From NCBI RefSeq assembly GCF_000737315.1, contig NZ_JMCB01000008.1:525980-589979 (forward strand): a stretch of DNA of 64,000 nucleotides, written 5' to 3'. This stretch comes from Hyalangium minutum (GTDB lineage: Bacteria; Myxococcota; Myxococcia; Myxococcales; Myxococcaceae). Of this stretch, positions 3,414 to 42,281 are shown in pieces (the first letter of the stretch is position 1; every line of letters begins with the position of its first letter). The notes beneath the pieces are model-generated. The model had not been told where the DNA came from. It saw only the letters and a program-made list of their open reading frames with translations, and made no database searches. A program made the translations under genes and the position numbers.

Positions 3414-3836
3414 CTATGGGGCGCGCGGCGCTCTGGCCCCAATGTCTTGCCCCATGGCACGGGACATCGGAGGGTTGCGCGCGGCGGCCCGCAGCGTCAC
3501 TCTCTTGCCCACGGGGGTGCCCTCGCTGTCCGAGCGCTCGGTGGGAATGGGCAGGGCGTAGTGACCATCCACGCCGCTCACCGCGACGCCCGCCACGGCG
3601 GTCCCGTTGATGTCCAGCGCTGTCACCTCCGCGCCCGCGACTGGCTGGCCTGAGAGGAGATCGAACACCTTGCCCTCGACCTGCACCGGCGCGAAGCACT
3701 GGGGGATATCCTTCCCGCGCACATGCTCACAGACGAGACCGGACGAGCATGAGCGTGGATCATCGAGTCTGCACTCGGTGTTGCCGACACAGGCCATCAG
3801 CAGTGCTGCAAGGGCCGGAATGATTCGCTTCAGCAT
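3414..3836 (-). pseudogene. C-terminally truncated lipoprotein with carboxypeptidase-regulatory-like (transthyretin-type) domain
   Basis: Lipobox LLMAC, Cys-rich start, VEGKVFDLLSGQPVAGAEV..DGHYALP motif; sequence loses coherence after RVTLRAAAR. Confidence 0.5.
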
Positions 3837-3948
3837 TCAGGAAGTCTCCTGGCATGAAGGGGCTCGAACGACCCGATCTGGCCCTGGTACTCCGGACGAA
3901 GGCAAGCGAAGTTGCCCCCCAGACAGCAGGCCCACTACTGTCGGAGCT

Positions 3949-6630: not shown

Positions 6631-6780
6631 GACCTGAGCCCTGGATGGGGCCTTGCTCACAAGCCCAGCCCTCTGACATCCCCCTGCTGCGAGGACAGCC
6701 TGGGCAGGGGTGTGCATCATTCTCCTGCTCGCCAGCTCATTCCTTCCGTGGGGCCATCCCGGCCCCTCGAAAGTGAAACC

Positions 6781-9660: not shown

Positions 9661-10260
9661 CGCTGGTTAGCGCCCTTCAGCTGCCAGCACGTGCCTACCT
9701 CGGGCGCATTGCTCGCGGCGGTGGTGCTGCGCACGGTGCGATGGGAGGCGATGCGGCTGCTGCTTCGCTTCTTCCGGGTACTGCTCTTCACTCTGGCGGC
9801 GCCCATGGGCCCCCAAAAGCGAGAGGGCCTGTCGCCGGGGTAGAGTCCCGACAACAAGCCCCTCTCAGGACAGCAGGCGCGGCCAAGCGCCAGCGCTGGC
9901 CTCACCCTCCGCCCAACAGGCTCACGCCGGACTCGCATCCGGGCATGAGTACCCCTATCGGGTGCTCGGGTGCGCATACAGCCTTAGCACGGCCAAGACC
10001 GGCCGTCCTAGCGCGCCCCGTGGTGCTCTACCCACCCCTGCGCGGGGTGGCACCCAGTTCGCACACGGGCTGCACAGGTTTGGCCGCCTGCGCGTGGCAC
10101 GGCGTTACCCGTGCCCCCGTCACGCGCTCAACACTGCGCCCCTGCGCGCACGGGCGTCAAGAGGGTGCTCGCGGCCACCCCTTGTCGCGCAGTCCTCACG
10201 CGGGGTTACTGCGCAGGCACAGCAGGTGCTACGCGCGCGTGGGCCCGCGTGCGTGTCCTC

Positions 10261-11079
10261 CTAGTGAGCGCGCTGCGCAGGCACCGGAGGCACGGGGAGA
10301 GTGCTGCTCGGTTCTTTGGGGGTGGGGATGCTCGGCAGGTAGCACCGGCCCTGCCACTCATACCCGCGCGTCTTGCACGCCGCGCGGCTGTAGACGATCT
10401 GCACCCAGCACGCGCGGGTGCCGTCCTTCAGCTCAATCTCAAACTCCGTGCCGTCCTCGCAGGGGGCCTTGCGCTGGCCCTTGAATGGGCGCGGCGGCAG
10501 ATCCAAGCCCACTGCTGGGCGCTGCGCGTCCACCGCCCCCACTGGCAACGCCTCCGGCTCAGCAAGGGCCTCTTCCGCCACAGAGGCCAGAGCGGGCTGC
10601 TCAGTCTCCTCGGGAATGGGCTGCGCAGCCTTCCATGCGCGCGGGGCCAAGGCTGAGCACGCCAGCAGTCCGGCCAGAGCCGCCCACTGCCAGCTGCGCA
10701 TGCGCGCACGTGGGCGGGCGGCAGGCGCGCACAGGTGGGCCATGGCCTCGGGGTGGTGCTCCAGTCCCTCCAGCACGCAGGCCAGCGCATCCAGCCCGTC
10801 GTTCACCTGGCCGAGGGGGTTGGTGCCCTGGGGCGCGCGCTCCACCTCCAGCGCCACGTAGGGAGAGGGAGAGGTGCCCGCACGCACGCGCAGGCGGTAC
10901 TCCTCGGCGGGGGCGTAGTGGCCTGGGGCAGCAGCCGTCACAAGCAGCGCGGGGCGGCCAGTAGCGGACTGCCACGCGGTGTACAGGCGGCCCACGCCAC
11001 CCTCGCCGCCGGTCGCGTTGCGCAGCCTGCGCAGTACCGTGTACGGCCCCACGCGGTTCTTCTGCCAGTTGCTGCTCAT
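10261..11079 (-). CDS. Myxobacterial degenerate kinase-N-lobe-like membrane protein with C-terminal Cys motif
   Basis: VGPYTVLRRL..GGVGRLYTA kinase-like start without HRD/DFG; TM segment WQWAALAGLLACSALA; PPRPFKGQRKAPC..CW..C..YEWQGRCYLP tail. Confidence 0.65.
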   Translation of the reverse strand: MSSNWQKNRVGPYTVLRRLRNATGGEGGVGRLYTAWQSATGRPALLVTAAAPGHYAPAEEYRLRVRAGTSPSPYVALEVERAPQGTNPLGQVNDGLDALACVLEGLEHHPEAMAHLCAPAARPRARMRSWQWAALAGLLACSALAPRAWKAAQPIPEETEQPALASVAEEALAEPEALPVGAVDAQRPAVGLDLPPRPFKGQRKAPCEDGTEFEIELKDGTRACWVQIVYSRAACKTRGYEWQGRCYLPSIPTPKEPSSTLPVPPVPAQRAH

Positions 11080-11278
11080 GTTCCGGCCCTCCCTCGCATC
11101 AAGGGCCTTTCATGTACCACGGCGCACGCTGGGAGGTTGCGCGCCGTCGAAGGCGCTCCGCGCTCTGGGACTTGGTCTGCTGCTGTTTGTGTAGCTGTTG
11201 CTGCTCGTGTGTGGTTCCCGGGTCAGACTAGACGGCTCGGAGAAGCCTAGTAACCTCGTTGAGGCATATGAGCCTTCA

Positions 11279-11399
11279 GGTGGCGTTCAGCTCGTCCAAC
11301 TCGGCCGTACGCGTCCACCCGTTCGTCGTCTTTTGGGACGCGGCCGCCTCCGAACAACTCCGTTTCCACCGCGTCGCCTGTCTTCGTGTAGAAGTTCTG
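11279..11399 (-). pseudogene. 5' fragment of PduO-type ATP:cob(I)alamin adenosyltransferase
   Basis: Minus strand [30 protein letters not shown], then after a 1-nt shift ELDELNAT-stop; matches the family N-terminal IYTKTGDxGxT..RVxK..RVxAYGxVDELN signature. Confidence 0.65.
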
Positions 11400-11775
11400 G
11401 GCTGAAGAGCACTGTCACGGCCAACCGCCTGGGGCCGCATTGACCTCTGGACGATCAGGCGGAGTGTGGTTTCAGAACGACGCAGTTCGCGGAGGCCGAT
11501 AAGCGCAAAGACCTCGGATCTCAGGGCAAGGCCCTGAAAACAGCAGCCCGGCGCCCACAGGTTCTCTACCTCCTGCGAGGGCCGGGCTTTCAAAACGACG
11601 AGCCCCCAGTTACCCAGGGACCGTACTCGTGGGCACGAGATTGGTCATTCTGGACACTGCACCTGCTCGTCGTCAACACGAGCCTTCGGGCTCCGTGCAG
11701 GGGGATCGTCTGCCCTGCGCAAACGCCGTGCTCTTGGTTTTAGAACCCATCGAGAGAAGCGCTGAGGAATACCTC

Positions 11776-12021
11776 ATGACCATTCTGACCGACGTCGTCT
11801 CACTCTTTTCTGTGCTGAAGGGCAACCCCGAGGCAGTCGCTCTTCTGGGGAATCTGCTCGACCGCATCGACCCAGGATGCTTGTTCGTTCTGGCCGTCTG
11901 CTTCTGGCGCACTCGTGAGCGATCCCCCACGTGCGGAGCGTCAACGGGCGCAGGCAAGCAGACGAAGAAAAGAGCCACACGAAGCAGCTTGAAGAAGAGA
12001 AAGGGGCCCACGAAGAAATGA
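11776..12021 (+). CDS. Small hypothetical membrane-associated protein
   Basis: GAGGA RBS before ATG; hydrophobic segment then Lys/Arg-rich tail. Confidence 0.35.
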   Translation: MTILTDVVSLFSVLKGNPEAVALLGNLLDRIDPGCLFVLAVCFWRTRERSPTCGASTGAGKQTKKRATRSSLKKRKGPTKK

Positions 12022-12095
12022 TGGCGCCTCCTGTCCGCTGGCTGCTGCGTGAAATTTCAGGTGCGCACGGGTGCAATGCGAAGCGCCAGGCGGCG

Positions 12096-12446
12096 GTGAA
12101 ATTTCAGGTGGTCGGGGACCAGGGAGCCGAAGGCCGCAAGGCCTTCTTCATCGAGATCGAGGCGCGACCCGGGCAGGAGGACGCGGTGGTGCAGATGCTG
12201 CGCGACATCCGTGCCTGCGTCGAAGACGAGCCCGCCACCGGCCCCTGGTTCGCGGTGCGGTTCTCGACGACGCGCTTCGGCATCTTCGAGGCCTTCCCCG
12301 ATCTGGCGGGGCGCCAGGCGCATGTGGACGGCGGCGGCGGCGACATCTTCCGCGACATCGAGCGGATGAACACGATCCTCAATGTCGCAGCCCGGGTCCA
12401 TCGGGTCGATGTACTGATGAGCAAGGACCGGTTCGCTCCTCTGTGA
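12096..12446 (+). CDS. Antibiotic biosynthesis monooxygenase (ABM) family protein, start uncertain
   Basis: FIEIEARPGQEDAV..EPATGPWFAVRFSTTRFGIFEAFPDLAGRQAH is an ABM ferredoxin-like motif. Confidence 0.7.
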   Translation: MKFQVVGDQGAEGRKAFFIEIEARPGQEDAVVQMLRDIRACVEDEPATGPWFAVRFSTTRFGIFEAFPDLAGRQAHVDGGGGDIFRDIERMNTILNVAARVHRVDVLMSKDRFAPL

Positions 12447-12502
12447 ATCCTCTCGTTCCGGCCGGCTTCACACTGAGAACGCTTCCAGGAATTCCCGAAT
12501 CC

Positions 12503-13285
12503 CTAGACCGTCGGCACCGTCCCCCCGTCGATCAAGTGCTCCGAGCCCGATATCGAACCCGCGCGCGGTGACACCAGAAAGGTGATCAGGTCGGCGACTT
12601 CCTGCGGCTTGGCCGGCCGCCCGAGCGGGATGCCGCCGAGCGATTGCATGATGATCTGCTTGCCGCCCTCGTAGTCCGTTCCGGCCTGGGTGGCCAGGCG
12701 CTCGGCCAGCGCAACGGAGGCTTCGGTCTCGACCCACCCGGGCGAGACGCGCAGCACGCGCACGCCCTTCGGTGTCACCTCCTTCGACAAGGCCTTGCTG
12801 TAGGTGGACAGGGCGGCCTTGGCCGCTGCATAGGCCGTTGTCGATTCCGGCAGCGGCAGCAGACGCTGGATCGAGCTGACGTGGACGATGACACCCGAGC
12901 CTTGCGCCAGCATGGCAGGCAGCAAGGCGCGGTCGAGCCGCACGGCCGGCATGAGGTTCCGGTTCAACGCATCGAACCACTGCGCATCGTCCAAAGCCGC
13001 AAAACCACCACCCGGCGCGCTCGAGCCGCCGAGCACATTGATCAGGATGTCGACGCCGCCCCAACGCTCTCGCACCGACCGCGCCACCTCGGCGACACCT
13101 TCGGCCGTCGAGAGGTCGGCCGCGACATACGACACGCCGGCGTTCGGCTCCGCGGGCACAGCGCGTGCGGTGGTCATTACCTGCACGCCCGCAGCGTGCA
13201 GACCTTGAACGACAGCGGCGCCAATGCCTTTGGTGCCTCCCGTGACCAGCGCCCGCAGGCCTTTCAGTTGGAGATCGAAGCTCAT
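12503..13285 (-). CDS. SDR family oxidoreductase
   Basis: [11 protein letters not shown] Rossmann motif; YAAAK catalytic YxxxK. Confidence 0.9.
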
Positions 13286-16038: not shown

Positions 16039-16219
16039 GGCACGGGAAACGCCCGCACAATCCCAGCTCGGCCCCATGGGCGCGCGCGGCGGACAGCTCC
16101 AGCTCGGGCCGGTGGCGCTCGCCAGGACGGCAGCCATCGTCGCCGCTCCGGTCGCGGGAGGGACGGCCCTTCGCCTCATCGACTCGGGCCGCCCCCCGCA
16201 CAGATCTCCGGCCCCCTTC

Positions 16220-16407
16220 TCGTACGCCAACACCCTGAAGCCTGCCTCCACACCTCAAGCACGCCAACACATCCAGGGCGAACGTCCTTTTCTGCAGCCC
16301 GGCCCAGTCCAAACCGGGGGTGCGCTCCTTCCAAAGGCTCCTCCACCCTCGCGGCAAAGGCGGGGCTCTCCTCCGTAAGCCCCGGCTCCGCCCCTGCTTG
16401 AGGGAGC
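16220..16407 (-). mobile_element. IS91-like (Y2/HUH) transposase 3' remnant
   Basis: KERTPGLDWAGLQKRTFALDVLACLRCGGRL, a C-terminal CxxC motif; closely similar to 32440-32628. Confidence 0.75.
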
Positions 16408-18512: not shown

Positions 18513-18668
18513 GATTGCCCCTGTTGGGCCGCATGTGCCCCCAGTGTGACCCTCCAGCGGGGAATTGAACGGGACGAGACGGGACGGAGCGGAGGAGCGA
18601 TCCACTGTGAGATCAAGGCGTTAGCCGGTAACAGCGCGACCTGCTTGGGGTTTTGCTTCCGCCTTGAT
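18513..18668 (+). repeat. Shared att arm, full-length copy
   Basis: Near-identical to 36399-36554; abuts a tmRNA 3'-end copy. Confidence 0.85.
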
Positions 18669-18693
18669 GCGGGTTCGATTCCCGCAGCCTCCA
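18669..18693 (+). repeat. tmRNA 3'-end copy (att-like remnant 3)
   Basis: GCGGG-TTCGATT-CCCGC-AGCCTCC-A. Confidence 0.8.
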
Positions 18694-18839: not shown

Positions 18840-20861
18840 GTGCAGCTTGTCTCGGTGCAGGTGGGGCCGTTCAAGTCAATCGACCAACCACAGACGGTCA
18901 AGATCGACCCAGAGGTAACCGTCTTCGTCGGTATGAACGAGGCGGGTAAGACCGTGTTCCTTCAGGCCCTTCATAAATCCGACGATGCCGCCGGTGTTGC
19001 CGTGTTCGACCCTGTTGAGGATTACCCTCGCAAGGACTTGTCGGCCTATCTCAGGCAACACACGACGAAGCCCGCCCAGGTCACGAAGCTTACCTACAAG
19101 CTTACAGCGGGCGAACTGGACGAGTTGAACCGCGACCTGCATACGAATCTCCCCGCCGACTTCGAATTTTCCCTGCTCCGGCATTATGACAATACACTAC
19201 GGATCCAACTGGGGATCGACGAAAAGCCTGTCCTGGATCATCTACGCCAAGATAGCCGGCTCAGCTCGGATGTGAGGGCAGCGCTAGCGGCAGTCACATC
19301 GGTAAGAAGTATCCCCAAAGCGACCGAGCATCTCAGCCTTACAGACAACGACAAAGGCTGGCTCGCCTCGGTCCAGCAGCGCATCACCAAGACGCAATGG
19401 GAATCCGTGACTCAAGCTGAAGCTTGGAATTGGTTGCAACCCCGCCTCCCAAAGTTTGCCTTCTTCGGAGAGTACGAGCTCCTGCCGAGCAAGCTGAATC
19501 TTACCGACTTGGCACGACGTGTTGAACAGGCGAAGTCAATCACGACGCCCCAGAATGCTCAGCAGGCCAAAGCTTCACAAAAACCTCTGGAGCCTCAGCA
19601 TCGTGCGGTACTTGCCTTATTGAGGATGGCTGATATCTCCGTAGAAGACTTCACGCGACCTGGAGGCGGGTATGAGTCCCTCAAGGCTAGGCTTGAAGCC
19701 ATCTCCATCAAGCTGACCGACGAAATACTGGAGTTCTGGAAACAAAACGAAGATCTAGAGGTCGAAGTCGACATTCGGCTCGATCCGGACGAACAGCCGC
19801 CTTTCAACAGTGGGCCGAACATCTACCTGCGCATCAAGAACCGGCGGCATCGCGGGGTCAGTACACCGTTCCACCAGCGGAGCAGGGGCTTCACCTGGTT
19901 CTTCAGCTTTCTGGTGTGGTTTGACAGCGTGCAACATCAACTAGCTGTTGGCGACCCTGGGGACCGTGACCTCATCCTGCTGCTGGATGAGCCCGGGCTG
20001 AATCTCCACGCACTCGCCCAAGCCGATTTCCTGCGGTACATCGACAGATTGGCTGAGAAACATCAAGTACTCTACACCACGCACTCTCCATTCATGGTCC
20101 ACTCTGACCGGCTTCACCAAGTCCGTGTCGTCGAGGATCGCGTAAAGGTGGGTACTGTGCTTTCCGATAATGTGAGCAACTCAGATCCGCGAACCATCTT
20201 TCCACTACAGGCGGCATTAGGCTGGACCCTAGCGCAGAACCTCTTTATTTCGGAGCGAAACCTATTGGTGGAAGGGCCCTCCGACCTGCTGTACCTGCAG
20301 GCGATCTCATCCCTCCTTGAGGCCCAAGGACGAGTTGGTTTGCGTGAGGAAGTAACTATCGTACCGACAGGTGGGCTCGACAAGGTGGTCACCTTCGTTG
20401 CGTTGCTTGGGGCAAACGGGCTCAAGCTTGCGGTCCTTCACGACTATCGGGGAAGGCCAGAGCAGAAACTTGAGGACCTTGTGAAGCAGAAGATGATCGC
20501 CCCCAAGGCCTTGCTCGACGTTTCGCAATTCCGAGATCTCGCCAATATCGGAAAGAGCAGCCGAGCATCGGACATCGAAGATCTCCTGCCGGTGAGCCTG
20601 TATCTCGATTACTTCAATAGGGCTTTCAGCCAGCAACTAGGTAGCACGAAGGTCACCGAAGCGGACTTGCCGGCCGGGGACCGGGTTCTTGATCGGATTG
20701 AACGACATCTGTCCACCACTAGAATACATATCCGCCCCAGTGGAGGCTTCAATCATTACGCCGTGGCCTCCCTCTTCGTCAGTAGTCCTCCATCCAGTCT
20801 CGACGCGGATGCCCTGGCTCGGTTCGAGTCGTTATTCCGGGCAGTGAATGGGCTGTTCTGA
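18840..20861 (+). CDS. OLD-family ABC-ATPase + TOPRIM nuclease, candidate anti-phage protein
   Basis: AAGGAG RBS before GTG; Walker A GMNEAGKT, Walker B LLLDEPG, TTHSP H-loop, TOPRIM LLVEGPSD and LHDY; AT-richer than flanks. Confidence 0.85.
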   Translation: MQLVSVQVGPFKSIDQPQTVKIDPEVTVFVGMNEAGKTVFLQALHKSDDAAGVAVFDPVEDYPRKDLSAYLRQHTTKPAQVTKLTYKLTAGELDELNRDLHTNLPADFEFSLLRHYDNTLRIQLGIDEKPVLDHLRQDSRLSSDVRAALAAVTSVRSIPKATEHLSLTDNDKGWLASVQQRITKTQWESVTQAEAWNWLQPRLPKFAFFGEYELLPSKLNLTDLARRVEQAKSITTPQNAQQAKASQKPLEPQHRAVLALLRMADISVEDFTRPGGGYESLKARLEAISIKLTDEILEFWKQNEDLEVEVDIRLDPDEQPPFNSGPNIYLRIKNRRHRGVSTPFHQRSRGFTWFFSFLVWFDSVQHQLAVGDPGDRDLILLLDEPGLNLHALAQADFLRYIDRLAEKHQVLYTTHSPFMVHSDRLHQVRVVEDRVKVGTVLSDNVSNSDPRTIFPLQAALGWTLAQNLFISERNLLVEGPSDLLYLQAISSLLEAQGRVGLREEVTIVPTGGLDKVVTFVALLGANGLKLAVLHDYRGRPEQKLEDLVKQKMIAPKALLDVSQFRDLANIGKSSRASDIEDLLPVSLYLDYFNRAFSQQLGSTKVTEADLPAGDRVLDRIERHLSTTRIHIRPSGGFNHYAVASLFVSSPPSSLDADALARFESLFRAVNGLF

Positions 20862-20884
20862 TCAACGCCTGTTGGGTAGAAAAT

Positions 20885-21245
20885 GCGCATAAGAAGGATA
20901 GGGGCAGTGTTGAAGGGAACGGGCGAGAGCAGAGAGGCAGCCGAGGGCTGCTGACGAGTGCCGGAGGGCCGAGTGCCACGTCGGTGCACCCACAGCGCAG
21001 CCTAAGAGGGTACACGCCTGCTTAAGCCGCCCTCCCATGAGGAAGCGGCAAGCGATGGGCCACTGCTGCTGATGAGCTGATGACTCAACACCACGAGTTC
21101 TGGGGGCCCCCGCGCCGGGGCCAGCCTCCCAGGCAGCGTGGGCAGACCTTAGGTGCTCCAAGAGGGCACGCACCCCACCGGGAGCCGTCACATACGTCAG
21201 CACCCGGCGCTTGCCTCCACACCTGCCGCACGCGAACACGTCTAG
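20885..21245 (-). mobile_element. IS91-like element terminus plus transposase 3' remnant
   Basis: FACGRCGGKRRVLTYVTAPGGVRALLEHL on the minus strand; terminal motif GCGCATAAGAAGGATAGGGGCAGTG at 20885. Confidence 0.75.
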
Positions 21246-21322
21246 CGCGAAGCTCCTGCGCAGCAGCCCGACTTCGTGGTTGGCAGGGTACGCAAATTCG
21301 TACAGGAGTAGTATCCGGTCCC

Positions 21323-24019
21323 ATGTTGCAGATCCTGAGTGAAACGGTTCTCAAGGGCACCTACCGCATCGATCAGAGGATCGGCATGGGCAGCATGGGC
21401 CCCGTCTATCGAGCCACCCACCTCGGGCTCGATAAGGCCATGGCGGTCAAGTTGCTCTCGCCGGATGCGCTCACCACGCCGCAAAGCTTCGCGCGCTTCA
21501 AGCGGGAGGCCATGGTCGTCAGCGGGGTCAACCACCCGGCGATGGTGCACGTCATCGACTTCGGGGAGGAGCAGGGCACGCCGTATATCGTCATGGAGTA
21601 CGTGGACGGCATCGATCTGGCCGAGTACATCGCGCACCAGGGGCCGATGCCGCCACGGCAGGCGGTGGCGGTGATGCGGCAGCTCGTCTCGCTGCTGCGC
21701 ACCATGCATGCGCAGGGCATCATCCACCGCAACCTCAAGCCGAGAAATATCCGGGTGCTCCAGGACGGCGAGGAGGATGGCCAGCTCTTCGTGAAGGTGC
21801 TTGCCTTCAGTCTCGCCACGGTGTTCGGCGAGCCTATCCATTCGGTGATACAGGGCACGCAACTGTACATGGCGCCAGAGCTGCTTGCCGGCAGGCAGAG
21901 CGACCAGCGGACGGATCTGTACGCCGCAGGGATGATCTTCCAAGAGATGCTAAGCGGAGATCGGCCCCCTCCTCTGCCCCTCCGCTGGGGGGCGCGACCT
22001 CTCCCCCCGGCCATGCCGGTGCCGAACGTGGTGCGCCAGACGCTGTGGACGTTTTGTGAGGAGCGCCCCCAAGATCGCTTCCAGAGCGCAGCGGAAGCGG
22101 AACATGCGCTCAGGGCTTGTGAGGATGCGCTGCGTCCCACTCCACCGGTGGCAGAGCGCAACCCCGCACGGCCCTCGGCCCAATCCAAGCCCCTCTCCCG
22201 CGAGAAGCCCCCGCCAGCCAACGGCCTGGACGTCGCCATCCTTACGGTCATCCAGCCCGAGCTCTTTGCCGTGCTCGACGCTTTGGGCATCTCTGCTTCT
22301 CAGAGAGAGAAGGATGCACACGGGACTGTGTACTTTCGCGGTTCACTGCGCTCGCAACTCACTGGGAGGGACTACGAACTCGTGGTGACGTGCATCGGTG
22401 CTGCCGGCAATTACGATGCATCCGCCGCCGCCTATGGCGTGATTGCGAAGCATCGACCCCGAGCGCTGCTCCTGCTGGGCATTGCTGCGGGAATGCGGGA
22501 GAAAGTCCAGATCGGGGAGGTTGTCCTCTCCGAACGCGTGGTGGCCTATGAACCTGCTGCTGTCGTGTCGTCGGGCGATGAGCGCTCATCGAACACGGAA
22601 CCACGCCCCGAGATCGATAGGCTGCCCCACTCAATGAGTCAGGATGTCACCACCTACAGGCCCAAGCCCGCCAGACTCGAGGCCCTATTCCGCGATGCCG
22701 GAGGACAGTTCCCTGTTGCGCCGGCCGGCCGAGAGGACGAGTTTCTAAACCTGGTCGCCACGACCATCAAGGTACGTGCCGCGACGATTGCCAGCGGGGA
22801 GAAGCTGCTGAGAGACCCAGCCAAGCTCCGAGCCGTCAAGCAGGAGCAGCATGGCAAGGTCGAGGTGGGCGAAATGGAAGCTGCGGGGCTGGTGGCTGCG
22901 TGCCGCCGCGCCAATGTCCCCTGGCTGGTCATCCGGGGCATCTCGGACTTTGGAGATCCATTCAAGGATGATCGTTTCCACGATTTCGCTTCACGTGCGG
23001 CAGCGACGGTCCTCGCGGATTTCCTGGCGTATGGGCTTTCCATTCCTGCCCGCTCGGGTCAGGTGACGGTGCCCGTTCCTCACTACCCCGATGAGCAGAC
23101 CCGCCTCTTGAGCCTTCAGCTTCAGGGCGCACGGGAGCGGAAGAAGCGGCTCCAGGACTCTGGGGTTGGGACGGCTCAGGTTGATCAAGAGATTCTGGCT
23201 CTGCGCCGTCACCTCCGAGAAGGAGGCCGGCTTCGAGCGGGTGATTCGCTAGGGGATGGCCGATACCTGCTGATCGAGTCCGTAGGCAGTGGAGGCTTCG
23301 CTACCATCTGGAGAGCACACGATCAGCAGGCGCAGAGGATCATCGCCATCAAGGTGCTGCATGCGAACCTGGCCGGCGATGAGGAACGACGGGAGCGATT
23401 CTTCCGCGGGGCGCGACGCATGGCGGAACTCCAGCACCCCGCAGTGGTTCAGGTGCTCGAGCAACACGGCGAAGACGGTGGGTACCAGTACTTCGTCATG
23501 GAATACATGCCTGGTGGAAACCTTCGTCAAGCAGTGCTCGAAAGACTCATCATGCCCGACAGAATCATTCCCATCATCCTCCGTGTCGGAGAAGCACTCG
23601 CGCTGGCTCACTCAAAGGGGATCATCCACCGCGATATCAAGCCCGCCAACATCCTCTTGGACAGCCATGGACAACCCCACCTTACGGACTTCGACCTCGT
23701 GGGTGCACTCGATACGACAGGAGGGACGAAGAGTGGAGCGATGGGGACCATCGTGTACGCGGCACCAGAGTGCCTGGAGCGTCCCCAGGAGGCAGACCCG
23801 AGGGCCGACGTCTATGGCCTTGGCATGACCGCCATCTTCGGGCTCCATGGAGCCGATCTGCCATTGCAGATCCTGAGGGGGCCCGAGCCCTTTCTCGAGC
23901 AACTTCCCTGCGCTGAAGGGCTGAAGGCGGTCCTGCACCGCGCCACCAGCATGGTTCCGGGCGATCGCTATGAAGATGCAAGCGAGTTCATCACGGCCCT
24001 TAGCGCATCGGGCGAATAG
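21323..24019 (+). CDS. Pseudokinase - PNP/MTA-SAH nucleosidase-like domain - Ser/Thr kinase fusion
   Basis: Kinase 1 has HRNLKPRN and AFS in place of HRD and DFG; middle domain ILTVIQPE..LLGIAAG..IASGEK..EMEAAG..IRGISD; kinase 2 has GSGGFA, AIK, HRDIKPAN, DFD and APE. Confidence 0.85.
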   Translation: MLQILSETVLKGTYRIDQRIGMGSMGPVYRATHLGLDKAMAVKLLSPDALTTPQSFARFKREAMVVSGVNHPAMVHVIDFGEEQGTPYIVMEYVDGIDLAEYIAHQGPMPPRQAVAVMRQLVSLLRTMHAQGIIHRNLKPRNIRVLQDGEEDGQLFVKVLAFSLATVFGEPIHSVIQGTQLYMAPELLAGRQSDQRTDLYAAGMIFQEMLSGDRPPPLPLRWGARPLPPAMPVPNVVRQTLWTFCEERPQDRFQSAAEAEHALRACEDALRPTPPVAERNPARPSAQSKPLSREKPPPANGLDVAILTVIQPELFAVLDALGISASQREKDAHGTVYFRGSLRSQLTGRDYELVVTCIGAAGNYDASAAAYGVIAKHRPRALLLLGIAAGMREKVQIGEVVLSERVVAYEPAAVVSSGDERSSNTEPRPEIDRLPHSMSQDVTTYRPKPARLEALFRDAGGQFPVAPAGREDEFLNLVATTIKVRAATIASGEKLLRDPAKLRAVKQEQHGKVEVGEMEAAGLVAACRRANVPWLVIRGISDFGDPFKDDRFHDFASRAAATVLADFLAYGLSIPARSGQVTVPVPHYPDEQTRLLSLQLQGARERKKRLQDSGVGTAQVDQEILALRRHLREGGRLRAGDSLGDGRYLLIESVGSGGFATIWRAHDQQAQRIIAIKVLHANLAGDEERRERFFRGARRMAELQHPAVVQVLEQHGEDGGYQYFVMEYMPGGNLRQAVLERLIMPDRIIPIILRVGEALALAHSKGIIHRDIKPANILLDSHGQPHLTDFDLVGALDTTGGTKSGAMGTIVYAAPECLERPQEADPRADVYGLGMTAIFGLHGADLPLQILRGPEPFLEQLPCAEGLKAVLHRATSMVPGDRYEDASEFITALSASGE

Positions 24020-24125
24020 GATGCCGGTTGAGGGTGTGGGACGCATAGGAGGGACAGGGGCACTGTTAGGTGCGAGGGAGGGGCATAGAGCGGCAGCGGA
24101 GGGTGGCTGACAGGGTTCCAGGGCC
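24013..24125 (-). mobile_element. IS91-like terminus copies (two adjacent variants)
   Basis: CGAATAGGA..CGG.TTGAGGGTG.GGG at 24013 matches 28962; ACGCATAGGAGGGACAGGGGCACTG at 24041 matches 20885 and 36345. Confidence 0.65.
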
Positions 24126-24247
24126 GTACGCGGGACGGGTGGCACCCACGGAACTCCGACAGGCCCGCTGTCAAAATGCTGCGGCTGGAAGTCCTACGGG
24201 ACCTACGCTCGACCGTGTGAGATCGCCCTCGCCAGAAGTTCCAAGCG

Positions 24248-24272
24248 GCGGGTTCGATTCCCGCCGCTTCCA
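24248..24272 (+). repeat. tmRNA 3'-end copy (att-like remnant 4)
   Basis: GCGGG-TTCGATT-CCCGC-CGCTTCC-A. Confidence 0.75.
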
Positions 24273-24483
24273 AAGGATGAGCGTTCTACTGAGAGCCAGG
24301 AGGCACAGAGCTCGGAGGAGGCTTTCTCCCTGACGGGCCTGACGAAGCAGTCCTCTGTTCTCCCTCCGAGGCACCGTGCAGTGGAGTGTGTACCGCCTGC
24401 GAAGCCCAGAGGTCACCGCGAGCGCCACCATCGTCGCCGTTCGAGGCGTTGCGGCTCTGCCGCGACGCACGTAGCGTCGGTGC

Positions 24484-24665: not shown

Positions 24666-25679
24666 TTGTCACCTGAAGAGGAGATACAGCCCATGCAGAT
24701 GTATCCCGCCTGTCCGAAGAGCTTGTTCGAATCCGTGCCTGGCACAGTCCAGGGATTGTCGTTTCTGGCGATGTTGAGTGCACTGCCGTTGCTGGGATGC
24801 GGCCTGGGACAGGGCTCCCCCTCCCCCGTCAGCGAGCGGAACCTCTCGACAGCAGGAGCGCTCACTGGGTGGGCGAGCGATGATCCAGGACAAGCTTTTG
24901 CATCCACCTTCTTCTCAGAGGTTCAGGCGGGTTATGACAACACCTGCGGCGTGAAGACGGACGGAACGCTCGCGTGCTGGGGGGAGGACTCCTACGGCCA
25001 GTCGTCGCCGCCAGCTGGCAGCTTCACGCAGGTCAGCGCGGGCAATAGCCATGCCTGTGGGTTGGATACGGCCGGGGCCGTCTCGTGCTGGGGGAACAAC
25101 AGCGGGGGCCAGGCCACGCCGCCCACCGGCAGCTTCACGCAGGTCAGCGCGGGCACTTCCCACACGTGCGGCGTGAAGACGGACGGGACGCTCGCGTGCT
25201 GGGGCTTCAACTCCTACGGCGAGTCCTCACCGCCCGCGGGAACCTTCACGCAGGTCAGCGCGGGCATGCAGCATACCTGTGGAGTGAAGACGAACGGGAC
25301 CGTCGCGTGCTGGGGACTCAACTTCGCCCGCCAGGCCTCACCTCCCGTGGGGACCTTCACCCAGGTCAGTGCGGGCTACGCAAGCACCTGTGGAGTGAGG
25401 ACGAACGGGACGCTCGCGTGCTGGGGCTTTGCGCATGCGCCGGGTTCGCCACCGACGGGGACCTTCACCCAGGTCAGCGTGGGCGGCTACCACACCTGCG
25501 GCCTGAGGCAGGACGGGACGGTGGCGTGCTGGGGAGCCAACAACGACGGCCAGTCCTCGGCTCCAGCAGGCCTCTTCACGCAGGTCAGCGCGGACGGCTA
25601 CCACACCTGCGGCCTGAGGCAGGACGGGACGGTGGAGTGCTGGGGAAACAACTTCGCCGGGCAGACCTCACCCCCGTAG
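24666..25679 (+). CDS. RCC1-like repeat beta-propeller protein, probably secreted or lipoprotein (start uncertain)
   Basis: Seven roughly 37-aa repeats FTQVSAGxxHTCGxxTDGTxxCWGxxxxGQ; hydrophobic LLGC segment. Confidence 0.85.
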   Translation: MSPEEEIQPMQMYPACPKSLFESVPGTVQGLSFLAMLSALPLLGCGLGQGSPSPVSERNLSTAGALTGWASDDPGQAFASTFFSEVQAGYDNTCGVKTDGTLACWGEDSYGQSSPPAGSFTQVSAGNSHACGLDTAGAVSCWGNNSGGQATPPTGSFTQVSAGTSHTCGVKTDGTLACWGFNSYGESSPPAGTFTQVSAGMQHTCGVKTNGTVACWGLNFARQASPPVGTFTQVSAGYASTCGVRTNGTLACWGFAHAPGSPPTGTFTQVSVGGYHTCGLRQDGTVACWGANNDGQSSAPAGLFTQVSADGYHTCGLRQDGTVECWGNNFAGQTSPP

Positions 25680-32124: not shown

Positions 32125-32628
32125 TAAGACAGATAGGAGCTGTGCTGAGGGTGAGGGCTGGTGCAGAGGGGCCGAGGAGGGCCGAGGACGACCGCAGAGG
32201 GGGACATGTGGGCTGTGTGCCAAGCCGGTGGAGAGGCCGCGCAGCCACTTTGAGGTACACGCCTACCCCAGCCGCCTTCCCAGGAGGGGCGCGGCAGGTG
32301 CCTGGCTCTCTTGGCTGGCTGGGGCGGCTTGAGCTTCAACACCACGCGCTCTGGGGCGGCCCTCGCGCAGGGGCCAGGTGCTCACTCGCCGGGGGCAACC
32401 CCAGGTGCTCCACTATCGCTCTCACCCCTCCTGCTCCCTTCACAGACGCCAACACCCTTAAGCCTGCCTCCACACCTCAAGCACGCCAACACTTCCAGGG
32501 CGAACCTCCTTTTCAGCAACCCGGCCCAGTTCAAACGGGGTGTGCGCTCCTTCCTCGGCTCCTCCCCCGTCGCGGCAAAGGCGGGGCTCTCTTCCGTAAG
32601 CCCCGGCTCCGCCCCTGCTTGAGGGAGC
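32125..32628 (-). mobile_element. IS91-like terminus plus transposase 3' remnant
   Basis: PRKERTPRLNWAGLLKRRFALEVLACLRCGGRL; terminus TAAGACAGATAGGAGCTGTG and internal GGTACACGCCT..AGCCGCC.TCCCA shared with 20890-21040. Confidence 0.75.
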
Positions 32629-32902
32629 GCCTCGGGCGACAGGTGCGCGTACTTCATTATCGAACGGCGGCTATTTTTAGGTGCGCCGTAGAGTGCTTCC
32701 GCAGCCGACCCGGGCAGGTCCACGCTCCTTTCTCGTCCCCTTGGGCAGCCCCCACGCCACACCAAGCCGTCCGGCGCACGTTGATCAGGCGCCCGGATTC
32801 CTCACGGGATTAGACGGCGCCATCTTGCCAACCCAACAGTGCCTTGATGCCCTAGAAAAGCATCAGCTACTCAATAGACCATAGGGCGGGTATATTGCTC
32901 TT

Positions 32903-35089
32903 ATGATCCATGTGGACCGCAGTCGCGTCTCTCCTCCACCGAAGTTTTTCGCGGCGGCTCAATCTCTTCTCGATAAGTCACGGCTTTTTTTCAACAATCC
33001 AGATAGCCTCAGGAGCCAAAGCCGCCCCGCCATCTTCGGCCAATTCGTCAACCTAAAGAATGTGGTGCGACCTGCTCTAATCGAACTATTCCACGGCAAG
33101 TGCGCCTATTGTGAATCGAGTGTCGCAGCCACAGGAAGTACCGCAGTGGATCACTTTCGTCCGAGGATGGATGCTGCAAACCTTGATAGGAAGATTTCGC
33201 CCATCCACTATTGGTGGCTGATGGCCACTTGGGACAATCTCTATCTGGCATGCCTTGAGTGCAATCGATACAAGCGCAACCTTTTTCCGGTGCGCCACCA
33301 ACGGGCTGTTCCCGAGAGCTTTGGACAAGCACTTGAGTCAGAAGGCCGGTTGCTTATCGATCCTTGCAACGACGAGCCCGAACAATCCTTCGCCTTTCAG
33401 CCCAATGGTCAAGTAGAGCCTCTTGATGAACACGCCAAGGTAACCATTGAAGTGCTGCAGCTCAATCGCCCTAGTCTTGTCCACATGAGACGGGATCATT
33501 ATGCTCGCATCACACAGGAACTCGGCCTCTGGATATCTAGCCAGAGGCAGACAAGCGTGTCAGGCGATGATCGGCTTGAGGCTGGACTTCGAGATAGGCT
33601 TTTAAGCTATACGCACAGCAGCGCTCCCTATGCAGCCGTTGCGCGGCAGGCACTTAGGCACGTTCTCCATCGCCTGCGAGGAGATGCTCTCCATACGGAA
33701 GTCCCTCCGGCACAGAAGAAAATCAGGCGAGGGCATCAAATCCCTCGAAAGCTGGAAAAAGCAGCTGAATCGCTCCGAACAGGGTGGATCTCGCGAATAG
33801 AAATAGAGAACTTCCGCGGCATCGACTCCCTTGCACTTGACTTTCCTCGTCTAGAGCATCGAGATTTCCTTGTAGACGACGAGATGACAGCAATAGCTTC
33901 GCCTAGCGAGACAGAAGACCCTGACATACGCCGCGAACCATGGCTGATGCTAATTGGCCCGAACGGTGTCGGGAAGAGCAGTGTCCTCAAAGCGGTCGCT
34001 CTAGCCCTCGTAGATGAGCCAACTCGAAACCGTCTCATTCCTGATGCCTCTTCAGTGCTCAACCAGCGCTCGCGCAGTTCCACCGGTGTCGTATTTGTGC
34101 GCTTTGACAATGGTGAGTCCGTCAGAATTTCTTTCAGTCGACGGTCTCGTACATTTCGGCAGCAAGGAGGCAGAGCACACTCTCCATTGCTTGCTTATGG
34201 TTCAACCAGGCTCCTCTCGCCGGGCACTGCACGTCTCGAACGACCGCGTAGCGTGCGCGTTGATAATCTTTTCCACCCAAGAACTCTGCTCGGCGATGCA
34301 GAGAAGTGGCTTGCCGATACTAGCCAACTCTTAGATAGCGGCTTTGACCTTCTGGCCCGCTCACTCAAAGATCTCCTCTCTCTAGATGATGAGGACCGCG
34401 TCATCCGTCAGAATGGCCGCCTGCTCATAGAGATGTCGGGTTCCCGGATTCCTCTGCACGAACTGAGCGATGGCTACCAGTCCATTGTTGCACTAGCCAC
34501 TCATATCATGGTGAACCTCTCACGAGGCGGCTTTGCACTGGAGCATGTAGCAGGAACGGTACTACTTGATGAACTTGAGGTTCACCTCCACCCAACTTGG
34601 AAAATACGTATTGTGCGCAGTTTAAGGCGAGTTTTTCCTCGGGTCCGATTCATTACAACTACTCATGATCCGCTTTGTCTAAGAGGCTTGGAATCAGGCG
34701 AGGTCTACCACCTTGATCGGGAACCAGAGTCGAAAAGGGTGCGAGCCATTCAATTGGACGTGCCGCCTGGCTTGCGTGTGGATCAACTCCTGACTGGCCA
34801 ATGGTTCGGTTTGAGTTCAACTCTCGATGCAGACACGTTGGCTCTTATGGAGAAACACCAGAGCCTACTCGCGCGACGAAGACTCAGCGCAACGGAGCAA
34901 CTCCAACTTGAGCAATTGAGCAACGAACTGCAAAGTCGCCTTAGCACTTTTGCCGATACATCTCTTGACCGCATGGCGCTGAGCGTCGCAGCACAACTCA
35001 TGGCCAGCACATCAACTCCGCTGACCCCAGATGAACGAACAAGGCTTCGTGAAGGAATTCGTCAAGCTCTGTCGGAAAAGGCTCCTTGA
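32903..35089 (+). CDS. HNH nuclease (PtuB/TIGR02646-like) fused to ABC-type ATPase (PtuA-like)
   Basis: N-term KCAYCE..VDHFRP..WDNLYLACLECN..LLIDPC..LQLNR; C-term ISRIEIENFRG, GPNGVGKS, LSDGY, LLDELEVHLHP, TTHDP. Confidence 0.85.
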   Translation: MIHVDRSRVSPPPKFFAAAQSLLDKSRLFFNNPDSLRSQSRPAIFGQFVNLKNVVRPALIELFHGKCAYCESSVAATGSTAVDHFRPRMDAANLDRKISPIHYWWLMATWDNLYLACLECNRYKRNLFPVRHQRAVPESFGQALESEGRLLIDPCNDEPEQSFAFQPNGQVEPLDEHAKVTIEVLQLNRPSLVHMRRDHYARITQELGLWISSQRQTSVSGDDRLEAGLRDRLLSYTHSSAPYAAVARQALRHVLHRLRGDALHTEVPPAQKKIRRGHQIPRKLEKAAESLRTGWISRIEIENFRGIDSLALDFPRLEHRDFLVDDEMTAIASPSETEDPDIRREPWLMLIGPNGVGKSSVLKAVALALVDEPTRNRLIPDASSVLNQRSRSSTGVVFVRFDNGESVRISFSRRSRTFRQQGGRAHSPLLAYGSTRLLSPGTARLERPRSVRVDNLFHPRTLLGDAEKWLADTSQLLDSGFDLLARSLKDLLSLDDEDRVIRQNGRLLIEMSGSRIPLHELSDGYQSIVALATHIMVNLSRGGFALEHVAGTVLLDELEVHLHPTWKIRIVRSLRRVFPRVRFITTTHDPLCLRGLESGEVYHLDREPESKRVRAIQLDVPPGLRVDQLLTGQWFGLSSTLDADTLALMEKHQSLLARRRLSATEQLQLEQLSNELQSRLSTFADTSLDRMALSVAAQLMASTSTPLTPDERTRLREGIRQALSEKAP

Positions 35090-35092
35090 GTC

Positions 35093-35923
35093 ATGGACCG
35101 CTTCCCGCGTCCCTCTAAGCCAAGAGGTTTTGATGCTTCGGTCAAGGCACACAAGGATCGAGTTCAATCTCACTTCAAGAAAAAGAAGCCGGGCAAATGG
35201 AAGTTTGAGGATATTTGGAGCAAGTACAAGCGGAACATCGCAGTCGCCTCACATGGAAAATGTGGCTACTGTGAAGTACGCGTTACTGGCTCCCAACATG
35301 GAGACGTCGATCACTTCTACCCTAAGGGAGAAGTGTGGGCACTCCATGATGACCGTACCAAATGGGGTCAAGAGATTCCTGGGCTATCTAAAGTCAAAGG
35401 GAGAAAAAAGAAGCTCCTTTCGCGCAGAGGCTACTGGTGGCTAGTCTACGAATGGAAGAACTACGTACTGGCATGCCTTGTGTGTAATCAGCAATGGAAA
35501 CTCTCGTTCTTTCCGGTACGTGCCAAGCGCCGCAAACTTCCTCCTTTGCCGCGTAGTAAAGAGAAACCCCTACTGCTAAACCCTTTCTTTGGTCCAGATC
35601 CAGTGAGGCACCTTCAATTCATCATTACAGGTGCAATCATTCCCTATAAAGGTAGCCGTTACGGTTTCGAGACTATCAGAACATGCGGGCTAGATCGCCC
35701 CAGTCTTACTCTCGATAGACATGAAAAAGCACAACGGGCCTACTATCTCCTCAAGAAGTTGACGACGTGTTTGCCGACGACTCCCGAGTATGACCTCACG
35801 CTCAAAGACTTTTTCCTTATGGGAAGAAAGGAAAATGTTCACTCTGGAATGATCCGCGCCATCTTTGAACAGGAGACTGCTATGAAGTGGAAGCAGCTTG
35901 AGAAACGGTTCGCTATCCCCTAG
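35093..35923 (+). CDS. HNH nuclease (PtuB/TIGR02646-like)
   Basis: KCGYCE..DVDHFYPK..YWWLVYEWKNYVLACLVCN..LLLNP..GLDRPSL; 3 bp after the ATPase stop; AT-rich. Confidence 0.85.
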   Translation: MDRFPRPSKPRGFDASVKAHKDRVQSHFKKKKPGKWKFEDIWSKYKRNIAVASHGKCGYCEVRVTGSQHGDVDHFYPKGEVWALHDDRTKWGQEIPGLSKVKGRKKKLLSRRGYWWLVYEWKNYVLACLVCNQQWKLSFFPVRAKRRKLPPLPRSKEKPLLLNPFFGPDPVRHLQFIITGAIIPYKGSRYGFETIRTCGLDRPSLTLDRHEKAQRAYYLLKKLTTCLPTTPEYDLTLKDFFLMGRKENVHSGMIRAIFEQETAMKWKQLEKRFAIP

Positions 35924-36157: not shown

Positions 36158-36182
36158 GAGGGTTCGATTCCCACCGCCTCCA
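36158..36182 (+). repeat. tmRNA 3'-end copy (att-like remnant 5)
   Basis: GAGGG-TTCGATT-CCCAC-CGCCTCC-A preceded by a very short arm relic GCATGTGCCTCCAGTGTGCC. Confidence 0.7.
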
Positions 36183-36344: not shown

Positions 36345-36398
36345 GCATAGGAAGGACAGGAGCCCTCTTGGGCGTAGCGGGCGGGAGCAGAGCGGGAG
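36345..36398 (-). mobile_element. IS91-like terminus copy
   Basis: GCATAGGAAGGACAGGAGC..TTG..CGGGCGGGAGCAGAGCGG aligns with 20887-20938. Confidence 0.7.
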
Positions 36399-36554
36399 GA
36401 TTGCCCCTGTTGGGCCGCATGTGCCCCCGGTGTAACCCTCCAGCGGGGAATGGAACGGGACGAGACGGGACGGAGCGGAGGAACGATCCACTGTGAGATC
36501 AAGGCATTAGCCGGTAACAGCGCGACCTGCTTGGGGTTTTGCTTCCGCCTTAAT
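36399..36554 (+). repeat. Shared att arm, full-length copy
   Basis: Near-identical to 18513-18668. Confidence 0.85.
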
Positions 36555-36578
36555 GCGGGTTCGATTCCCGCCGCCTCC
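36555..36578 (+). repeat. tmRNA 3'-end copy (att-like remnant 6)
   Basis: GCGGG-TTCGATT-CCCGC-CGCCTCC. Confidence 0.8.
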
Positions 36579-39795: not shown

Positions 39796-39831
39796 GTGCT
39801 CAACGCCTTTCGGCATCACGGCAAGGGGGAC
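39796..39831 (+). CRISPR. Solitary 36-bp CRISPR-type repeat (no array, no cas genes in the window)
   Basis: GTGCTCAACGCCTTTCGGCATCACGGCAAGGGGGAC with a GCC-TTTC-GGC hairpin; matches my recall of a myxobacterial type I repeat except near the 3' end. Confidence 0.6.
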
Positions 39832-40296
39832 CCTGCCAGCTAACCCGGCCCCGCCCAGGGGACTGAGTGCTCTCCCTTCAGGTGCGTGGCAGGCGCCGAG
39901 GCCTGTGGGGTGTCTTGAGCGCCTCAACACCCCGCTGCCTTATGGGGCCCTCGCGCCGGCGCCAGCCTCTCACCTGCCGTGGCCAGGCCCAGGTGCTTCA
40001 CCATCACGCAGCGTCACGGGACAGCGTGACGGTCACGCGTCCGATGGAGGCAGCGCGGAGCACCGCTGGAACTCCGGCGGAGTCCTCACGGATATCGACT
40101 GGCCATCCTGCGCCAGTCCGCAGCGCGGCGCTACGTGGGGGGCGCAGGGACGTGGCGAGTGTCCAGCCGTCAGCCTCGGGCGCGAGGCCGCCCCCGCAGG
40201 GTGCCCGGAGGTGAAGGACAGTACCACCCGGTGGCTCCTCCTCTTCTCCGTGTCTGCCCTCTACCCTGATCCCCTCCTCGCAAGAGCGGGTGACAC

Positions 40297-42256: not shown

Positions 42257-42281
42257 GTGGGTTCGATTCCCGCCGCCTCCA
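42257..42281 (+). repeat. tmRNA 3'-end copy (att-like remnant 7, right border of the mosaic)
   Basis: GTGGG-TTCGATT-CCCGC-CGCCTCC-A. Confidence 0.8.

Follow-up and report, generated by a model that had tools for sequence, protein, structure and literature searches.

Adenosine triphosphate (ATP) nucleosidases are known as immune effectors behind cyclic-nucleotide sensors, as in the cyclic-oligonucleotide-based antiphage signaling system (CBASS), behind the two-component phosphorelays of Detocs, behind nucleoside triphosphatases (NTPases) of the signal transduction ATPases with numerous domains (STAND) type, and behind Argonautes. The purine nucleoside phosphorylase-like (PNP) domains of Cap17, a CBASS effector, and of DtcC, from Detocs, cleave ATP and dATP to adenine and the sugar triphosphate and act by abortive infection, and mutation of D353 in DtcC abolishes Detocs defence (bioRxiv 10.1101/2023.01.24.525353). 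Here we describe a gene of Hyalangium minutum in which a PNP domain of this kind is fused to kinase domains. It lies in a stretch of 64,000 nucleotides (contig NZ_JMCB01000008.1, positions 525,980 to 589,979), which we call the window, and its product, the window protein, consists of a pseudokinase, the PNP domain, a helical linker and a C-terminal kinase with DFD in place of DFG. With moderate confidence, we read this gene as encoding a self-contained protein of immune type, an effector of abortive infection or regulated dormancy in which ATP cleavage would be under the control of the kinase.

The gene belongs to the longest open reading frame (ORF) of its region (21080..24019 on the plus strand, in the ORF list of the window). 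From the ATG at 21323 it encodes 898 amino acids, and the same start is called for its nearest relative, P0001, a protein of 901 amino acids with 97% identity to the window protein, found on a 4.25-Mb metagenome-assembled contig. In the window protein, Pfam detects Pkinase domains at the N- and C-terminal ends and PNP_UDP_1 (PF01048) at residues 327-563, with 64 bits. Reading the motifs directly and by regular expression confirmed several features proposed in a first-pass annotation of this DNA: the N-terminal kinase has lost both catalytic Asp motifs, with HRN (residues 135-137) in place of HRD and AFS (161-163) in place of DFG, and the PNP domain keeps its first Glu, EMEAAG and RGISD (E313, EME at 517-519 and GISD at 539-542). 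The linker proposed to be helical ahead of the second kinase (YPDEQTRLLS...REGGRLRAGD) is predicted by AlphaFold to form two helices, 591-612 and 618-631. As also anticipated, there is no transmembrane segment: no hydrophobic stretch of the protein qualifies, and the top 19-residue Kyte-Doolittle mean, located at the PNP fold's first strand, is 1.69. The architecture had been given as one without a recognised name, and indeed no named system or paper was found in a full-text literature search, nor were PNP-kinase or effector-linker-kinase proteins found described as a defence family in the full-text literature, of which subscription journals lie outside the coverage. The GC content at third codon positions (GC3) is 0.72, which is atypical next to the 0.85-0.93 of core genes at 42-64 kb of this GC-rich window (about 0.6-0.7), and a scan for promoters and terminators gave no signal above chance. 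Coordinates are collected in Table 1.

Regarding the central domain, profile scores and pairwise alignments support its placement with the immune, Cap17-type ATP nucleosidases and not with the nucleosidases of 5'-methylthioadenosine and S-adenosylhomocysteine (MTA/SAH; the enzymes are called MTANs), in agreement with the class first proposed for it. The PADLOC model PDLC00759 (CBASS 'Effector PN-superfamily') covers the whole domain with 238 bits, and the candidate-defence model PDC-M60C matches it with 93 bits. The NCBIfam models for MTANs gave 68 bits (NF004079, cut-off 169) and 42 bits (TIGR01704, cut-off 73.8), and those for futalosine hydrolase and HpnG scored still lower, which leaves the domain below every NCBIfam housekeeping cut-off. 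Neither the equivalog score nor the stand-alone size (about 230 amino acids) of MtnN/Pfs was found: the domain sits inside an 898-residue protein and contains an insertion of 40-70 residues that MTANs do not have. A sequence search of the PDB returned MTANs only, with at most 45 bits, and no immune PNP structure among the matches of the window protein. When aligned with the Cap17 and DtcC sequences that Rousset et al. (bioRxiv 10.1101/2023.01.24.525353) give in their Table S1, the domain is 35% identical to the PNP domain of Cap17 over the N-terminal half of the latter (BLASTP E 4e-23), with an RPE-containing insertion in both, and D542 aligns with D353 of DtcC. E313, E517 and D542 are invariant in alignment A1, which comprises 13 proteins, the window protein and the 12 full-length relatives that match it best. 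Outside this family, the nearest PNP domains, with 55-65% identity, are those of myxobacterial PNP-AAA_22, PNP-NB-ARC and PNP-TPR proteins; Table S4 of Rousset et al. includes in the Cap17 clade PNP proteins of Hyalangium, Archangium and Stigmatella that carry the label NLR-like (nucleotide-binding leucine-rich repeat-like). Our best guess, by clade membership, is that the window domain would cleave ATP and dATP too.

The likeness to Cap17, a TPALS-PNP effector, and to DtcC (same PNP subfamily, shared Cap17 insertion, equivalent Asp) ends with this domain. The window protein has no cyclic-nucleotide sensor, no CD-NTase (a nucleotidyltransferase of the cGAS/DncV type), no receiver domain and no histidine kinase, and its control would come from a Hanks-type kinase fused in the same polypeptide. 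With Pfam, Response_reg, HisKA and HATPase_c were absent from the protein and from the neighbouring ORFs scanned, which speaks against Detocs; regarding CBASS, no CD-NTase was found among these ORFs, and the effector model is matched in its PNP part only (model positions 242-504 of 506). The myxobacterial PNP proteins of the NLR or Avs-like STAND type (PNP-AAA_22/NB-ARC-TPR) follow a similar logic of effector, central module and sensor. In contrast to these close PNP relatives, with their AAA_22 or NB-ARC domains, no STAND P-loop NTPase was found in the window protein with Pfam; its central module is a protein kinase with a linker, and no C-terminal repeat sensor follows. The NTPase-FGS systems have NACHT, MNS, nSTAND1, KAP or AP-GTPase central modules, and kinases for Ser, Thr or Tyr count among their effectors (Kaur et al. 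2021, PMC8195603). Their effectors are alike (TIR, PNPase, caspase, Death-like and calcineurin-like), and their FGE-sulfatase sensor is also present in the wider kinase family described below, in which, unlike in NTPase-FGS, the kinase is the constant central module. Stk2 and PD-T4-6, stand-alone defence genes that also code for a Hanks-type Ser/Thr kinase, carry no fused nucleosidase, and we have not seen an alpha-C-Gly/DFD signature described for either. Many PD-T4-6 models match both kinase domains of the window protein about equally, probably as a matter of generic kinase similarity, and the NCBIfam MAD6 and PglW models stay far under their cut-offs. Plant tandem kinase proteins and the integrated decoys of NLRs also combine, in an immune protein, a kinase with a pseudokinase derived from a host kinase; with them the window protein shares an analogy only, and homology limited to the kinase fold. 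The window protein is a variation on known kinds, immune PNP effectors and NLR-like three-part receptors, and not a categorically new system.

In alignment A1, the block from residue about 300 to the C-terminus is conserved (55-69% identity, with many invariant columns), and both termini vary around it. Hence, the conserved unit is not the pseudokinase-nucleosidase-kinase fusion first suggested, but the PNP domain, the linker and the alpha-C-Gly/DFD kinase. A pseudokinase followed by PNP and DFD kinase was found in just two proteins, the window protein and P0001. In the same upstream position, P0008 has a kinase that keeps HRD and DFG, P0017 has nothing, and P0002, P0004, P0005, P0007, P0011, P0012, P0015 and P0016 have a domain of 130-160 residues. 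After the kinase, the window protein has nothing, P0002, P0004 and P0007 present a calcineurin-like phosphoesterase, and P0017 an FGE-sulfatase domain. We modelled the N-terminal domain common to the sister proteins (predicted local distance difference test score, pLDDT, 89; predicted template modelling score, pTM, 0.86), and a structural search with it returned as top match the EVE domain of VcaM4I (E 1e-13, template modelling score 0.70-0.74), followed by EVE-domain proteins and YTH readers of N6-methyladenosine (m6A). According to this model, the slot of the window pseudokinase is predicted to be occupied by an EVE reader of modified bases in most sisters. This predicted domain is what the sisters share with modification-dependent restriction enzymes of the VcaM4I type; the window protein differs from these in its pseudokinase at the corresponding place and in its effector, a PNP domain and not an HNH nuclease. 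A sensor role for the pseudokinase would follow from its position alone and finds no support as stated; the sisters have the EVE reader in the same slot. In the precomputed Pfam annotation, PF28530 (DUF8426) is found N-terminal to the PNP domain in P0005, P0006 and P0016, with L088 4664-8134 listed beside them; this family is probably equivalent to the EVE-like domain or a second copy of it.

The C-terminal kinase appears unusual, but equipped with catalytic residues. It has a G-loop (GSGGFA), the VAIK Lys (K677), the HRD Asp (HRD at 769-771), the catalytic-loop Asn (N776), the DFG Asp (D789) and APE (814-816), all of them invariant in A1 and conserved to at least 90% in 77 modules of the family. 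The Gly of DFG and the alpha-C Glu, which forms the Lys-Glu salt bridge, are missing: DFD (789-791) stands for DFG, and Gly696, in RFFRGARRM, replaces the Glu, both changes being invariant in the family. Its description as a second kinase with intact motifs is then right for HRD, Lys, Asn and APE, and wrong for DFG and the alpha-C Glu.

To delimit the wider family, we searched the two most conserved peptides in one genome per species and obtained 80 loci. All RFxRGA loci with a complete module have (L/I)(T/S)DFD, and all but two have HRDxKPxN. Among 77 distinct modules, conservation of at least 90% was found for the linker motif R..ReGgqL..Gd.L, the catalytic Lys, the HRD, the Asn and the first Asp of DFD, as well as for most of the activation loop DtTGgT, where three of the six positions are at 60-90%. 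A profile search in 1.84 billion cluster representatives gave the same picture, the best 150 matches being proteins of 434-1615 amino acids that nearly all match over linker and kinase, with 470-630 bits. The hosts are Sorangium, Nannocystis, Polyangia, Corallococcus, Archangium and Hyalangium, together with Thermoanaerobaculia and Holophagae (Acidobacteriota), often with several paralogues in one genome. Upstream of the module, the Pfam census (78 loci) yielded TIR_2 (41), TIR (13), AAA_35 (12), AAA_22 (12), PNP_UDP_1 (9), a further kinase (5), SIR2_2 (3) and SEFIR (2), besides bDLD3, Death, CHAT, caspase and DUF4365 (once each). Downstream (65 loci), FGE-sulfatase (32) was followed by TPR (about 9), a further kinase (3) and Metallophos (2). 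Ten independently called proteins from a representative library confirm such architectures, among them TIR-kinase-kinase (P0124, P0127 and P0129), kinase-SIR2 (P0123), Metallophos-kinase (P0126), PNP-kinase-Metallophos (P0132), and, in P0151, EAD9 ahead of four kinase domains and AAA_35. Second kinase domains are recurrent in the family and often have a degenerate catalytic loop (HRN, HGD or HLD). Relatives with such a second kinase (HRN or HGD) are P0022, P0129, P0142, P0122 and P0144, and in P0142 the degenerate kinase is N-terminal, as in the window protein; the pairing of kinase and pseudokinase has therefore arisen, as far as sequences can tell, more than once in the family. At the N-terminus of P0022 there is a helical domain that, judged by eye, resembles an effector-associated or Death-like domain.

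The linker and the DFD kinase thus appear to form a reusable module, with a constant core and swappable effectors and sensors, and the domain vocabulary of the family reads as that of NLR-like immune and conflict proteins, with the kinase standing where these carry a STAND NTPase. In a passing remark, Doré et al. 2024 (PMC10907252) mention regulation through 'NTPase or protein kinase domains'.

The N-terminal domain has the kinase fold without the catalytic-base Asp and without the metal-binding Asp, as in pseudokinases. It retains the G-loop (GMGSMG), the VAIK Lys (in AVK), the alpha-C Glu, the catalytic-loop Asn and APE. Ser/Thr kinases of about 600-660 amino acids form a common family in Hyalangium; the pseudokinase is 59-60% identical to their kinase domains, and it is a recently captured copy of such a host kinase domain. 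Its eight close paralogues all have HRD and DFG, as against HRN and AFS in the window protein and P0001, and its activation segment is about four residues shorter than theirs. Between the window protein and P0001, the pseudokinase shows 18 non-synonymous and 7 synonymous changes, with a ratio of non-synonymous to synonymous rates (dN/dS) of 0.81 in this one pairwise comparison. The PNP-linker-kinase core shows 8 and 12, respectively (dN/dS 0.22), and is under purifying selection; the difference in substitution counts gives a Fisher p = 0.04, with small counts. The pseudokinase evolves either under relaxed constraint or under diversifying pressure, the counts being too few to separate both. It may work as an integrated decoy, drawing a factor directed at host kinases, or may regulate the active kinase as its allosteric partner; an ATP-binding regulator and a decaying domain are the alternatives.

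Taken as a kinase-controlled ATP nucleosidase, the protein could work as follows. The trigger would be bound by the variable slot, that is, the pseudokinase in the window protein, EVE in the sisters, and FGE-sulfatase or TPR in the wider family. The helical linker would pair kinase domains, allowing trans-phosphorylation of their DTTGGT activation loops, and phosphorylation would release PNP domains or assemble them into an active oligomer. In enzymes of the PNP fold, active sites form where subunits meet, and assembly would for this reason be a natural on-switch. ATP and dATP would then be converted to adenine and ribose-5'-triphosphate, starving the invader and arresting the cell. One could also take the C-terminal kinase as a second effector rather than a switch.

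Several points weigh against this kinase-controlled reading. Contacts between domains cannot be read, because the full-length AlphaFold model of the window protein is too poor (pLDDT 63, pTM 0.36), and the direction of control, from kinase to PNP domain, is assumed from position alone. Since it has no alpha-C Glu, the C-terminal kinase could be a nucleotide-binding switch and not a phosphotransferase. The specificity for ATP is derived from clade membership, with a placement that comes from scores and pairwise alignments. The pseudokinase is near-neutral (25 substitutions in one pair) and possibly just decaying. Seven homologue loci consist of single genes with differing, mostly housekeeping neighbours and no conserved partner, and they do not show the enrichment of homologues in defence islands that had been proposed as a check. 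Finally, no relatives were found on viral contigs. A defence role for the window gene remains a reasonable reading, and the chief interest shifts to the linker and the alpha-C-Gly/DFD kinase. We tentatively consider, as a possible though doubtful extension, that this module serves as an immune chassis without a name of its own, taking over from the STAND NTPase and coupling sensors (EVE, FGE-sulfatase, TPR and integrated kinase decoys) to interchangeable killers (TIR, PNP, SIR2, caspase and Death-like adaptors) through phosphorylation; the window pseudokinase would in that case bait a phage factor that attacks host kinases, with ATP destruction as the response.

One could argue for the same biochemistry in another conflict, with the gene giving multicellular myxobacteria a device for regulated cell death or dormancy, to be used in kin discrimination, developmental lysis or responses to invaders other than phages (plasmids, predatory or epibiotic bacteria). 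The concentration of the family in social, multicellular Myxococcota would fit, as would the absence of relatives from the viral contigs, the AHH polymorphic-toxin nuclease in the window, the Imm52 and EndoU-type genes at the P0001 locus, and the partner domains bDLD3, EAD9, caspase/CHAT and FGE-sulfatase, which Kaur et al. (PMC7159879, PMC8195603) describe in 'conflict systems of multicellular bacteria'. We nevertheless regard such a device as unlikely: EVE in the sisters suggests that modified nucleic acid, a signature typical of phages, is being recognised, the neighbouring OLD and Septu genes are anti-phage systems, and Cap17 and DtcC act against phages experimentally (bioRxiv 10.1101/2023.01.24.525353).

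Quite improbable, in our view, is a housekeeping or signalling enzyme, either a nucleosidase under kinase control that serves MTA/SAH or purine salvage, or a maker of a base or sugar-phosphate signal, wired into the large Ser/Thr kinase network of myxobacteria. The PNP fold and its catalytic residues are common to MTA/SAH nucleosidases, which were the only solved relatives found, homologues lie among housekeeping genes, and Kaur et al. have proposed PNPase domains as possible makers of second messengers. This is opposed by the scores of the domain, under every MTAN, futalosine and HpnG cut-off and high for the CBASS effector model, by the TIR, SIR2, caspase and Death-like domains that the kinase module carries in paralogues, and by the mobile 3.1-kb segment with a GC3 that is low for the genome; in addition, there is no pathway operon, because the neighbours differ at every homologue locus. 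Last and least probable is a degenerating fusion, in which a rearrangement mediated by insertion sequences (IS) put a host kinase fragment before a PNP-kinase gene, leaving the N-terminal domain, or all of the protein, on course to become a pseudogene: the loss of both catalytic Asp residues, the shortened activation loop, the raised dN/dS of the pseudokinase, the ISCR/IS91 remnant that abuts the gene start and the occurrence of the architecture in two sequences only would agree with it, but the 898-codon frame is open in two genomes at 97% identity, the pseudokinase retains its other motifs, the core is under purifying selection, and kinase-pseudokinase tandems recur independently (P0022, P0129, P0142).

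If the kinase-controlled reading is true, a eukaryotic-like Ser/Thr kinase as constant control module would be a new trigger mode for bacterial immunity, and a bacterial parallel to the kinase/pseudokinase immune receptors that plants have. Members of the family can readily be located in genomes by their distinctive RFFRGA...DFD signature, and for the EVE-bearing sisters the likely ligand would be modified DNA.

Table 1. Positions of the PNP-kinase gene, its domains and the surrounding features in the window
Feature	Position	Strand	Remarks
Complete gene	21323..24019	+	898 codons + stop; order pseudokinase, PNP domain, helical linker, DFD kinase; Pfam, PADLOC and NCBIfam matches
N-terminal pseudokinase	21362..22147	+	Residues about 14-275; Pkinase match; HRN 21725-21733, AFS 21803-21811
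Cap17-type PNP domain (predicted ATP nucleosidase)	22223..23047	+	Residues 301-575; EME 22871-22879; catalytic Asp542 22946-22948
Two-helix linker	23078..23242	+	Residues 586-640; ends LRRxLREGGxLRAGD; invariant columns in A1; conserved in 77 modules
C-terminal alpha-C-Gly/DFD kinase	23255..24016	+	Residues 645-898; Pkinase match; activation loop DTTGGT, then APE
C-terminal kinase residues	K677 23351-23353; G696 23408-23410; HRD 23627-23635; DFD 23687-23695	+	Direct reading
Segment shared with other genome	21151..24272	+	Carries only this gene; 97.1% identity to metagenome-assembled contig CAVSWU010000003.1
ISCR/IS91 remnant	20886-21270	-	3' end of transposase gene and element end; adjoins the gene upstream; left edge of shared segment inside
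Partial diverged IS-end copy	24042..24149		Right after the stop codon; 67% identity over 110 nt to 20886-20993; weak similarity
tRNA/tmRNA 3'-end-like hairpin with acceptor-like tail	24248..24274	+	Right edge of shared segment; homology ends at 24272
Hairpin copies	77-93, 999-1015, 18669-18685, 24248-24264, 36158-36174, 36555-36571, 42257-42273	+	T-arm-like
OLD-family AAA_15 + TOPRIM ATPase/nuclease	18840-20861	+	460 bp upstream of the PNP-kinase gene; matched by the PADLOC models Old, AriA and GajA
Septu	32903-35089 and 35093-35923	+	PtuA with N-terminal PtuB/HNH-like part, 568 bits; PtuB, 133 bits
AHH nuclease toxin	40297-41652	+	451 aa; C-terminal AHH domain (HNH/EndoVII superfamily), typical of polymorphic toxins

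Comparison by blastn of the window with the locus of P0001 (L001) aligned the shared segment to positions 9829-12975 of the latter, with unrelated flanks on both loci. These data support a stand-alone, mobile PNP-kinase gene in a defence-rich region, with a 3.1-kb single-gene segment and with OLD and Septu in the window. The flanking IS91-like termini that had been noticed on both sides are real upstream (20886-21270), whereas downstream there is just the weak, partial copy listed in Table 1. The upstream remnant is 69% identical over 400 nt to 32125-32523, and its identity as ISCR/IS91 follows from this better-preserved copy (32125-32770, about 32.3-32.8 kb), in which a frameshift-joined minus-strand peptide (...LNWAGLLKRRFALEVLACLRCGGRL/RVLASVKGAGGVRAIVEHLGLPP...APARGPPQ) matches the C-terminus of the NCBIfam ISCR_clade_Ia (IS91-family) transposase at positions 445-508 of 509 (E 6e-9). 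Further closer or partial remnant copies lie at 16206-16407, 39869-40021 and 36345-36398. The 125-residue minus-strand ORF at 20862-21239 had no match in Pfam, NCBIfam or a plasmid tblastn search. No intact Y2 transposase with oriIS and terIS was found, the remnants being C-terminal, frameshifted pieces of about 50-130 codons; likewise, there was no Y2_Tnp Pfam match near the gene, and no intact ISCR/IS91 transposase was seen in the window. Because two remnants directly precede defence cargo (the PNP-kinase gene and Septu), rolling-circle mobilisation of neighbouring genes is suggested.

The right edge of the shared segment carries a hairpin, GCGGGTTCGATTCCCGC, of which there are 7 same-strand copies in the window (with at most 2 mismatches), compared with 0.53 expected by chance. 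Two of the copies are contained in 180-nt repeats (18513-18692 and 36399-36578) that are 96% identical. Genes for tRNA or tmRNA at island edges were considered and discarded, with none found by ARAGORN in the window or L001 and none by Rfam at the gathering threshold. Since these searches were negative and the matches of the repeats to tmRNA models are weak, we call the hairpins tRNA/tmRNA 3'-end-like repeats and not genes. They look like remnants of attachment sites that mark a chain of small islands, at roughly 1-42 kb, and we picture the PNP-kinase gene as the right-hand cargo of an island at 18.7-24.3 kb, with the OLD-family gene as the left-hand one.

The OLD-family ATPase was also examined as an operon partner of the PNP-kinase gene, and rejected, since neither the 97%-identical copy nor any of the other homologues has it as a neighbour. 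It lies outside the system, given that no partner is conserved across homologue loci, and we consider it an independent defence candidate. Septu is found 9 kb downstream of the PNP-kinase gene, in a patch of low GC (0.52), behind an ISCR/IS91 remnant copy. Rfam gave a single match to CRISPR-DR23 at 39796-39831 on the plus strand (46 bits, with a threshold of 45), which could be a chance match or a lone repeat. Around P0001, on the other hand, Fic, Imm52 (an immunity protein against polymorphic toxins) and EndoU-type genes are found (L001 5863-9741 and 18198-19235), with a divergently oriented kinase gene and a TPR gene downstream, a conflict-gene neighbourhood unlike that of the window. Finally, the window encodes large repeat proteins on the plus strand (3607-9072 and 24666-25679) of the surface or secreted type that is typical of myxobacteria, unrelated to the PNP-kinase gene. 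They combine thrombospondin type 3 with Kelch repeats (13 tandem units of 108 nt, 4888-6483) and Kelch with PKD/Big_9, and include an RCC1-repeat protein with tandem units of 111 nt.

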